Source: Octopus sinensis
Taxonomy: Eukaryota
DNA: 64,000 bases
Direction: 5' to 3'
NCBI RefSeq assembly: GCF_006345805.1
Contig: NC_043016.1
Location: 28,024,001-28,088,000 of the forward strand
Shown here one piece after another: positions 2,712-5,700 of this stretch (the first letter of the stretch is position 1; each line of letters begins with the position of its first letter). A program made the position numbers and the translations under genes. The notes beneath the pieces were generated by a model. That model saw nothing but the letters and a program-made list of their open reading frames with translations. It did no database searches and had not been told where the DNA came from.

Positions 2712-5700
2712 GTAATGGTTATTTTCTTTTACTATCATAAACTTGCAGATTTTTATGAACTAGCTTATTTTAGTCTGTGTATGTGAGTGTGACTCTGTAT
2801 GTGTGTGTGGCTGATTAGAAGTCCTTTACTGTGATAATTTTGTGGCATGCTCATCACATATATAACCCCTTCATTCTACAGATCTCTTTCTCTGAATTAT
2901 TCATTCATTAAAGAAAACTTTTTTTTGTAAGTTTATTGCTGATGTCTACATATTGTTGTATATTATAAAACTAAACCTGTTGTTTCAATGAGTGTGCATG
3001 TATGTTTCAGTGCTCAGCTACCACACATATTCTCCGACTGAATTGGTCACCTGATGGTCACTACATAGTTTCAGCTCATGCAATGAACAACTCAGGACCT
3101 ACAGCACAAATAATCGAGCGTGATGGGTGGCGAACATCAATGGATTTTGTTGGTCACCGAAAAGCTATTACTGTAGTTGTTAGTATATTTTTGTATGCCT
3201 CTTCCTTTTGTTTTGATTCTACTTGAAAAGAAGTCAGTTTGAAACTTGGTTAATATAATACACCTAAAACTTAGGTAATGTAGTTTGTATTTCATTAGAA
3301 GTAAAGCAATAGGAACAGCAGAAAAAGAACACTATCTGCTGCTATACACCATCACAAATATACCATTTCTGCATTCATAGCCACTCACCTTCAAAATTAT
3401 ATATCACCACATATAGTCCTCTTCATTCACTGTCCATGTTACACTACCATGCACCACCATACTTACACACACACAACATATAGTCCTCTACATTTATTAA
3501 CTATGTTTTGCTACCATACACCATCACACATCTTACATACCTTGTATTGACTATTACTCAGAACACGGATGGACAAATATAGTAAAACATTATGTTTGCC
3601 AATTTAAATGATTTTGTTGTTGGTAAAAACTCAAGTCAGAATTTAGATGAAAATTAGTTCCATCATGAACAATTTCAAATAGATTTAATCTAGTTCACTG
3701 CCTCTTCATGAATTTTACTACTCAATCATAGCTAATTATTTTATATGGCACATTCATGTGAATTTTAGTTACTCTTGTGGACATTCTGTTATAATATTTA
3801 TAATAATAATAATTCTCTTTCAGCGTTTTAATCCCAACATTCTATCTATGAAAGTTAAAAAAGAATTAGATAAGGTGAGTTTACACGAATTTCCTCCATC
3901 TCCCTAACTATTATACCCTATTTGATCTAAGTTTATCCTGTTTAGTTGCATCTCTCTCTATGTTATTCATATAACAGTTTGAATTCATTACGAATTTACA
4001 AACTACAGTATAGTATCTATTCTCACAACTAGGTAGGCTGAGGGAGTAAGATGTGAATTGGATGTAGATAATAGATAATTCATATTCGTATTCGTATTTA
4101 TTGCCATGGTTGTAGTAGGATTCATAGAAGAAGTTTCGTGGGAATATTGAATTCACAAGCGGTCCCCGATATCCTGCATGCATATCCCCAGTGACAGGAC
4201 GTCCTGTTTGCCGCAGAGTCTCCACAGACGTGGGGACAGAACAACCTTGAAGCTGCCGGTTGCCGATCAGACGCCTCTTGGAATTTTCACCAGAGCCCCA
4301 TTGGCCAGGCTACGGCCCTAATACCACTCGGTGCTAGACCAATCCGCCTTGGGTGGCCCTACTAGGAACCAAAGCTCCCGACGGCGTAGCTCTGACACTG
4401 CCCGTTTATACCACCCTACCACTTTGGGGAGGGGTTGGACTTTAGAGTAGTAGATATGGAACACTTCACGAATTTGCGTGTCATTCTTGTGCAGGGGCCA
4501 TGCTAATCTTCAGAATTGGATGTACATAGCATGGCATTGGTATTAAGCTGGAAACCATCAGATCTTTGATATGGCAGCTGATGTTCTATTAAATCACTTG
4601 AATTATATTGCTTCTAATAAATTCATTTCTTTTGTGTAAGAAATAGATTTAGTTCACTGCAAATAATTTTAAAATTCCTGACTATTTTGATGTCATTTAC
4701 ATGTGGTTTCTCAAGTTTATGTTCTTCAAGATTCTGGTATTATGATAGCAAGAGAACAAACTAATTGAAATATTGTGTGCTATAAATATGGTTTTTTAAA
4801 ATTTCGTCACTGAAAATGAGAATAATGGTTTAAAGACCTATAAGGTTGTTAACAACAATTAATTTCAAATATTAGTTTTGTTTTATCACCATATCCTTTT
4901 CATCGAAAAATATTACCTTACTAAGAACTGGGTAAGAGTTGGCAATGGGAATGAGTATCTAGTCATAGAAAATCTGCCATACAAATAAAGCTAAGCACAA
5001 ACTTATATATGCACATTTTATTATACATTTTTTAACCATGAGCATGGCTATGCATGGGTAGGAAGTTTACTTCCCAACCACATGGTTTGAGGTTTTGGGG
5101 TTCAATCCTACTGAACAGCACCTTGGGCAAGTGTCTTCTACTTAGGCTGTAGCCCAACCATAGCCTTGTGAATGAAATTGGTCGGTGGAAACTAAAAGTT
5201 CATTGTGTGTGTGTGAAAGTGCTTATTCTATACCTTTCTCTGTTGTTTATACTTCTATACTCCACCTCTCTCTCTCTCTCATTTCCATTTTTTTCTCCTT
5301 TATAACTCTTACGCATTGATGACCTTTGTTATGATTCCAGCCTCAACAATACACATGCTGTGCCATTGGTAGTCGTGATAGATCACTTTCAATATGGGTA
5401 AGTCTCATTTTATAAAGCCCTTAACATTTTCCCATGGTTCTCTCATTCATTATTTCACTCAAATTTTTATCCTTTTTTTTATAACCCTAATAATGTTAGA
5501 TATGTTTATGTATTATATAGAGCAGTGTGTCTTGTCTAAGGTTTACACTTTAGTTATAAATAATAATGGTGTTAGATATATTGATGTATTTATACAATAG
5601 TCATCATATCAGTCCTGATTATGCATACCTATGATCAATCATTCCAGTATTCACCATCCTGACTTTCCATACATGCAGGACTTCATTTTATTTTTAAGTG

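Follow-up and report, generated by a model that had tools for sequence, protein, structure and literature searches.

The 64-kb window of Octopus sinensis DNA analyzed here (64,000 nt of contig NC_043016.1; all coordinates are those of the window) begins within a compact part of HIRA, the gene of a histone chaperone, since five consecutive small exons of its WD40 region lie on the plus strand at 2634-2711, 3011-3178, 3824-3874, 5341-5397 and ~6308-6379, with canonical AG/GT borders. When exons A and B, the two that lie upstream, were spliced and translated, the peptide matched proteins named "protein HIRA/HIR1" with 76% identity and 100% query coverage; the protein search retrieved HIRA exon open reading frames (ORFs) from other animals, but none from an octopus orthologue. 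Exon C (3824-3874; 17 residues, donor GTGAGT) and exon D (5341-5397; 19 residues, donor GTAAGT), both on the plus strand and seen in the ORF translations, enclose an intron of 1,466 nt (3875-5340). This intron carries, 180 nt past its donor and antisense to the gene, a 446-bp insert headed by a fragment of U6 small nuclear RNA (snRNA) sequence, which is the subject of this work.

The insert occupies 4067-4512 on the minus strand, between identical 12-mers at 4055-4066 and 4513-4524. Read on that strand from 4524 to 4055, the order is one copy of the 12-mer (TACATCCAATTC), a single T (4512), 58 nt of U6 (4511-4454), 387 nt of a different sequence (4453-4067) and the other copy of TACATCCAATTC. 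The copy at 4055-4066, on the 3' side of the element, reads GAATTGGATGTA on the plus strand and agrees at 12 of 12 positions with the copy at 4513-4524, on the 5' side; the 12-mer occurs exactly twice in the window, in both cases on the same strand. The original prediction of a 446-bp insert between identical repeats was thus borne out, and its structural reading was supported, namely a retroposed unit with a target-site duplication (TSD), in which a U6 head truncated at its 5' end is joined to foreign sequence with a tail of short repeats. The feature is real, and all of the elements described for it were confirmed to be present in their places.

A repeated 12-mer within 64 kb is unremarkable by itself. 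At least two matches to this one, allowing up to one mismatch, were obtained in 14 of 100 shuffles, whereas exact non-low-complexity 12-mer pairs in direct orientation, spaced 100 to 1,500 nt apart, were found only about once per 2 kb (microsatellite block excluded). The inner edges of the two copies coincide to the base with two independently defined boundaries, the point where homology to U6 starts and that where, in a 100-nt profile, the GC-rich block stops, and from the density of 12-mer pairs the chance of such a coincidence with both boundaries would be, as a rough estimate, ~1e-5. Furthermore, a single perfect 12-bp TSD brackets the whole bipartite unit, U6 and its 3' partner lie in the same orientation, and the joint between them contains no internal TSD or flank remnant, being a direct fusion near the mature 3' end of U6.

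The U6 part, predicted as ~58 nt from the 3' portion of U6 on the minus strand, was confirmed by a match to Rfam family RF00026 at 4454-4511 (score, 55.6 bits, the gathering threshold being 44; E value, 2.8e-11), corresponding to model positions ~44-101 of 105. Genuine homology is limited to this interval. The Rfam alignment extends up to 4543, crossing the TSD into the flank, and the homology to the U6 5' stem-loop that this extension would imply was rejected as a forced alignment of flank sequence. The fragment opens with GA, the final two bases of the ACAGAGA box, and its last base is the first U of the terminal U-run; model positions 1-43 are absent. Given that it has neither the 5' stem-loop nor the oligo-U terminator, and lacks most of the ACAGAGA box, this is not a functional U6 gene, which would be complete (~105-107 nt) and followed by a T-run terminator. 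At the 5' edge, the T at 4512 matches neither U6, where an A is expected, nor the target. At the joint with the body, CCATAT/CTACTAC, at most one T of the U6 U-run was kept; the predicted junction CATAT/CTACT therefore stood as described, with the qualification that one T of the oligo-T may remain.

Two mismatches to the Rfam consensus, GCGC to GCAC and AAGG to AAGA, fall in columns of high conservation. A third difference, AGCG to AGTG (CpG to TpG), separates the fragment from the human U6 sequence, so that two of the three differences are CpG transitions. Therefore, either the copy is not brand new or its source was a variant U6.

The remaining 387 nt (4453-4067, minus strand), referred to below as the body, were in agreement with the prediction of a GC- and CpG-rich segment of ~390 nt unlike anything else in the window. 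Their GC content is 0.51 and their CpG observed/expected (o/e) ratio 0.72, versus 0.345 and 0.30 for the window, and a blastn search (word size 7) of the 64 kb found the body itself and no second copy. The o/e ratios of TpG and CpA in the body (1.03 and 0.96, respectively) show no excess, versus 1.31 for each in the window. The body contains no long ORF. Toward its 3' end it presents an AATAAA hexamer (4097-4102), located 30 nt from the end of the insert and with no poly(A) after it, then the tandem repeat (TACGAA)2TATGAA (4079-4096), and finally the 12 nt TTATCTATTATC (4067-4078), which stand between the hexamer repeat and the TSD. Both of the predicted tail signals were thus present, but the repeat is not terminal. 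The final 12 nt may be where the copied RNA genuinely ended, or else nucleotides added at priming.

The triple hexamer is non-random, as only 12 of 20,000 shuffles of the insert produced one, and no other element in the window bears it. Its third unit differs from the others by a CpG-to-TpG change, which looks like CpG decay. The description of the insert as young could be upheld only in part: the lack of TpG and CpA excess in the body and the perfect TSD agree with it, whereas the U6 mismatches, which include a CpG-to-CpA change, the CpG-to-TpG difference from human U6 and the TATGAA unit do not.

Neither a copy of the body nor U6 was found in ~61 kb of sampled octopus DNA, namely 20-kb samples of one O. 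sinensis locus (L001) and of the O. vulgaris loci L003 to L005, all located via protein look-up; the resulting bound on copy number is very loose, as it excludes only families of roughly at least 50,000 copies per genome. No protein homologue was found when a six-frame translation of the body (803-amino-acid query) was compared with 5.8 billion proteins, a set that includes exon-sized ORFs from animal genome assemblies. Two HMMER matches of the longest body frame to 1.84 billion representatives were discarded as tandem-repeat artifacts, each made of 9 to 12 weak stretches with 24 to 28% identity. No Rfam family was found for the body at E values up to 10, apart from a chance match to snoR130 (15 bits), and no tRNA was detected in the insert by ARAGORN; tRNA-like A and B boxes picked out by eye in the body were rejected, their spacing being off consensus. 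Exact-match scans of JGI metagenome contigs, IMG/VR and GTDB genomes, collections without octopus genomes, yielded no match to the body, and none of its k-mers occurred in full-text papers or in the supplements to the octopus long interspersed nuclear element (LINE) paper. The term "SINEU" in the latter was a false lead, the actual word being "SINEUP."

When folded, the body RNA was no stabler than its shuffles (z scores of +1.3 for the whole and +0.4 for its final 134 nt). The tetranucleotide TTTT does not occur in the body, which is uninformative because 35% of its shuffles were also free of it. The absence of protein homology, of an Rfam family and of a tRNA is consistent with a non-coding body resembling an untranslated region (UTR), and we infer that the body is the 3' end of a LINE, of a partner short interspersed nuclear element (SINE) or of some other transcript.

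For their part, other retroelements were seen elsewhere in the window. A C-terminal ORF2 fragment of a CR1-like LINE lies at 7441-8031 on the minus strand, with 75 to 82% identity to O. sinensis and O. vulgaris copies and ~40% to bird CR1; it is followed by a UTR of ~30 nt and then by an (ATT)n tail (7385-7415). The host genome thus holds CR1-like LINEs with simple-repeat tails. A CR1-like ORF 82% identical to the window copy was also present in a 604-bp metagenome scaffold (L002; ENA ERZ23500404), so that octopod-like DNA occurs in a metagenome of environmental or host-associated origin. Another LINE C-terminal ORF, of a lineage different from the CR1-like one, is found at 13878-14330 on the plus strand, with an A-run of the poly(A) type ~65 nt further on (~14395-14407). 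An abundant repeat of ~390 bp, which ends in a TA/CA microsatellite, occurs in both orientations at 6734-7135, 10473-10655, 18017-18182, 50937-51289, 52028-52217, 53972-54363 and 63055-63195, and several copies per 20 kb, with 80 to 87% identity, were present in the O. sinensis and O. vulgaris loci, in which the segment 6734-7126 gave repeated matches. This repeat is presumably the major octopus SINE.

The architecture of the insert has closer precedents than the mammalian U6/L1 chimeras named in the original prediction, which missed the non-L1 chimeras of platypus and Anolis. The report of Doucet et al. (2015; PMC4476161) describes ~40 platypus U6-L2 and U6-Mon-1 chimeras, nearly all composed of a 5'-truncated U6 placed upstream of a short 3' L2 segment with a (TGAA)n end, and most of them carrying TSDs of 1 to 9 bp. 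It also lists Anolis U6 chimeras with L1, L2, RTE and AnolisSINE2, together with possible RTE and CR1 cases in opossum and turkey, and concludes that template switching onto U6 is general among retrotransposons that lack long terminal repeats (non-LTR retrotransposons). Like these platypus and Anolis chimeras, the octopus insert has a sense U6 at its 5' end, which in those cases is also usually 5' truncated, fused to a short 3' segment and flanked by a TSD. The 3' segment of those chimeras comes from a LINE or SINE and has a simple repeat at its end instead of poly(A), and they are read as the result of switching between templates during target-primed reverse transcription. Of the features of "Group IV" U6 chimeras, a 5' U6 in the same orientation, a direct fusion and a single flanking TSD are found here. 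The octopus insert differs in its host, a cephalopod mollusc, in its 3' partner, which is unmatched to any LINE or SINE, and in the length of its TSD (12 bp).

Human U6/L1 chimeras consist of a full-length U6 with 4 to 8 T, the 3' end of L1 and poly(A), at a TTTT/A target (PMC6789731; PMC11838501). The octopus insert shares with such mammalian pseudogenes (Buzdin, Garcia-Perez, Gilbert; Moldovan et al. 2019) the bipartite structure, the common orientation, the single TSD and, presumably, the manufacture by a LINE. Unlike them, its U6 is truncated at both ends, with at most one T of the U-run at the junction, poly(A) is absent and the inferred nick is GATGTA/CATAGC, so that the marks of an L1-type chimera are not found. 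In the mammalian case, RtcB ligation of U6 ending in a 2',3'-cyclic phosphate to a 5'-OH RNA is a demonstrated route (PMC6789731; PMC11838501).

Two further systems resemble the insert in part. The SINEU elements of crocodilians, headed by U1 or U2 (Kojima 2015; PMC4494074), also combine an snRNA-derived 5' part with a LINE-type 3' part; in contrast to the single octopus copy and its U6, which RNA polymerase III (Pol III) transcribes from an external promoter, they are multicopy elements with a consensus and have heads derived from RNA polymerase II (Pol II) snRNAs. Similarly, the MINE (WEIRD-MGL) and tripartite chimeras of Magnaporthe join a cellular non-coding RNA to a 5'-truncated LINE 3' end by LINE template switching (Gogvadze et al. 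2007; PMC2104539). These non-mammalian chimeras have direct repeats of 10 to 20 bp at their flanks (PMC2104539), and they differ from the octopus insert in that the 5' partner is WEIRD RNA instead of U6 and the host is a fungus. In open-access text, no report of an invertebrate U6 chimera of this architecture was found.

Taken as a whole, the insert is most likely not a new type of mobile element but a side product, of the kind described in vertebrates, that a LINE reverse transcriptase made once. We consider it probable that it is a single bipartite chimeric retrocopy, composed of U6 and of the 3' end of a LINE or of its partner SINE, that was generated by a LINE template switch. Thus, of the three origins that had been offered for it, the chimera with a LINE end is favored on the strength of the published platypus and Anolis architecture, whereas the SINE gained no support.

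The formation of such a chimera would start with the endonuclease of a non-LTR retrotransposon (LINE) nicking the HIRA intron at ...GGATGTA/CATAGC... on the plus strand, the site inferred from the TSD. The reverse transcriptase would then prime on the 3' end of an RNA ending in AATAAA-(TACGAA)n-TTATCTATTATC and copy ~387 nt of it, after which it would switch templates to U6 snRNA, landing at or beside the first U of the 3' U-run. It would copy 58 nt of U6 and stop just past the ACAGAGA box, and second-strand synthesis and repair would leave the 12-bp TSD. Most likely the RNA at the 3' side would derive from a "stringent" LINE (CR1/L2/RTE type), as its 3' UTR, or from a SINE borrowing such a tail; a stringent LINE, which recognizes its own 3' end and a simple-repeat tail, would account for the lack of poly(A).

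Several observations argue for this template-switch origin. A LINE-type chimera is favored because the architecture matches that of the published non-L1 U6 chimeras of platypus and Anolis (PMC4476161). An AATAAA followed by a non-random hexamer repeat and no poly(A) is what would be expected of LINEs priming on a simple-repeat tail, and the host genome does contain CR1-like LINEs whose tails are of that type. The U6 part ends in the natural 3' region of mature U6 and not at some random internal position, which fits a jump of the reverse transcriptase onto the free 3' end of U6 RNA. Template switching would be preferred over prior ligation of the two RNAs because the ligation of U6 with a cyclic phosphate (>p) should keep the U-run, and one U at most is present here. 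With no U6 promoter, complete U6 or terminator, the insert is not expected to be functional or mobile, and probably it was made once and was dead on arrival.

Before the insertion, the site would have read ...GCTATGTACATCCAATTCACATCTTAC... on the element strand, containing the 12-mer once. No paralogous repeat spanning the joined flanks was found in the window, and there is no paralogous empty site because the target is unique intron sequence. A database look-up of the ORF that spans the edge of the insert returned no record.

Other points weigh against the template-switch origin. Although the tail features fit the end of a LINE or SINE, no match of the body to a LINE, a SINE or a transcript was obtained, so that calling it a LINE 3' end, by its tail features and by analogy, stays tentative. 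Neither of the LINE 3' ends in the window (7385-7440 and 14331-14410) resembles it. The 3' stem-loop of a stringent LINE is not evident, given that the RNA shows no excess stability, and, with 12 nt following it, the hexamer repeat does not strictly count as the terminal sequence used for priming. Human U6/L1 chimeras keep 4 to 8 T (PMC6789731), but here there is one T only, and the loss of the terminator is equally required by a Pol III read-through or by a SINE origin. In addition, the 12-bp TSD exceeds the 1 to 9 bp of the platypus L2 chimeras (PMC4476161), and the bound on copy number is a very loose one, since only families of at least roughly 50,000 copies per genome are excluded by it.

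An alternative that we regard as unlikely is that the partner joined to U6 was the 3' end of a normal Pol II transcript of the host (the 3' UTR of an mRNA or a long non-coding RNA), copied in trans after priming by microhomology at or near its cleavage site. The AATAAA 30 nt from the insert end, at the usual distance from a cleavage site, would agree with this, as would a non-coding body with no other copy in the sampled DNA, and both U6-mRNA chimeras and tailless retrocopies primed by microhomology are known for L1 (PMC4476161). However, poly(A) is entirely absent, a GC content of 0.51 and a CpG o/e ratio of 0.72 are atypical of this AT-rich, CpG-depleted genome, and the non-random hexamer repeat fits a LINE tail better. 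Moreover, stringent LINEs seldom form processed pseudogenes (PMC4476161).

A shade less likely still, the insert could be a 5'-truncated copy of a low-copy SINE-like family with a U6 head and this same body and tail, founded by a chimera and amplified by its partner LINE. With the U6 T-run terminator missing from the junction and no TTTT in the body, Pol III read-through would be possible in principle; SINEs headed by the snRNAs U1 and U2 exist (PMC4494074), and SINE heads are thought to be acquired via the same kind of template switch (PMC4476161). Nevertheless, the missing TTTT carries no information when 35% of shuffles share it, no second copy was seen in the 64 kb plus ~61 kb of octopus DNA, and no ORF on any related sequence appeared among the 5.8 billion proteins. 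That no second copy was found while the abundant octopus SINE recurs in the same sample argues against an abundant SINE family. An internal promoter has not been reported for snRNA genes (PMC4494074), so that a U6 head would not obviously be transcribed after insertion. The means of its own transcription that a SINE carries are not found in the insert, in which U6 positions 1-43 are missing and ARAGORN detected no tRNA-like part, and no U6-headed SINE is described in the open-access literature searched. The narrower version of this idea, a truncated member of a low-copy, octopus-specific U6-headed SINE that lost its terminator and was moved by a LINE with a (TACGAA)n tail, seems improbable.

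The retrocopy of a Pol III read-through transcript of a terminator-less U6 gene, in which the body would be the downstream flank and U6 would be followed directly by CTACTACTCTAAAG..., is very improbable. The collinearity of U6 and the body would agree with it, as would the single T at their junction and the 387 nt free of TTTT, and a CpG-rich body could, speculatively, suit the spacer of an unmethylated snRNA gene cluster. Against this, such an origin needs both an unusual U6 gene without a terminator and a fortuitous LINE-compatible end (AATAAA and hexamer repeat) at the point where the transcript stopped. The lack of TTTT is expected by chance (35% of shuffles), the published account of such an architecture is template switching (PMC4476161), and read-through is the least parsimonious of the three options. 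We give equally little credence to the insert not being one event (nested or adjacent insertions, or cDNA captured in double-strand-break repair, with a coincidental or repair-made 12-mer), which has nothing specific in its favor, was kept because the body is unmatched, and is countered by the one perfect TSD exactly at both boundaries of the whole unit, by the lack of an internal TSD or flank remnant and by the common orientation of the two parts.

Additional features were recorded in the rest of the window. What remains of a DDE_1 transposase of the pogo/Tigger type (Pfam PF03184; E value, 8.7e-13) lies at 15971-16411 on the minus strand. A dispersed element made of two or three tandem units of 65 to 66 bp (consensus ...AAAAACACCATTCGAGCGTGGTCGTTGCCAGTGCCGCCTGACTGGC...), GC- and CpG-rich relative to the genome, was found at 45470-45687, 48287-48504, 55279-55497 and 60821-61045. 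A microsatellite block of 2.4 kb (42600-45050) contains (TA)n, (TG)n and (TATATG)n, and the GC content falls to 0.08 at 44 to 45 kb. At 37664-37979 there is a near-perfect palindrome, with 158-nt arms that are 97% complementary and have no spacer, formed by AT-rich sequence containing (AAAT)n; a foldback element would account for it, as would an assembly artifact. The GC skew reverses sharply within 20001-22000, from -0.41 to +0.40 in adjacent 1-kb windows, which suggests an inverted duplication or opposed strand-biased repeats.

As a single dead intronic insertion, the U6-headed insert is not expected to have a functional consequence, while a family sharing its junction genome-wide, if there were one, would be notable. 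If the proposed template-switch origin is true, LINE-to-U6 template switching occurs in a mollusc as well, having so far been documented for L1 in mammals and for L2, RTE and SINE partners in platypus and lizard. This would support the idea that such switching is generally inherent in non-LTR reverse transcriptases and in the nuclear availability of U6. LINE activity in octopus is of current interest (PMC9115989), and the insert would also point to a LINE or SINE lineage in this animal that retains CpGs, may have been active recently and is not otherwise seen.

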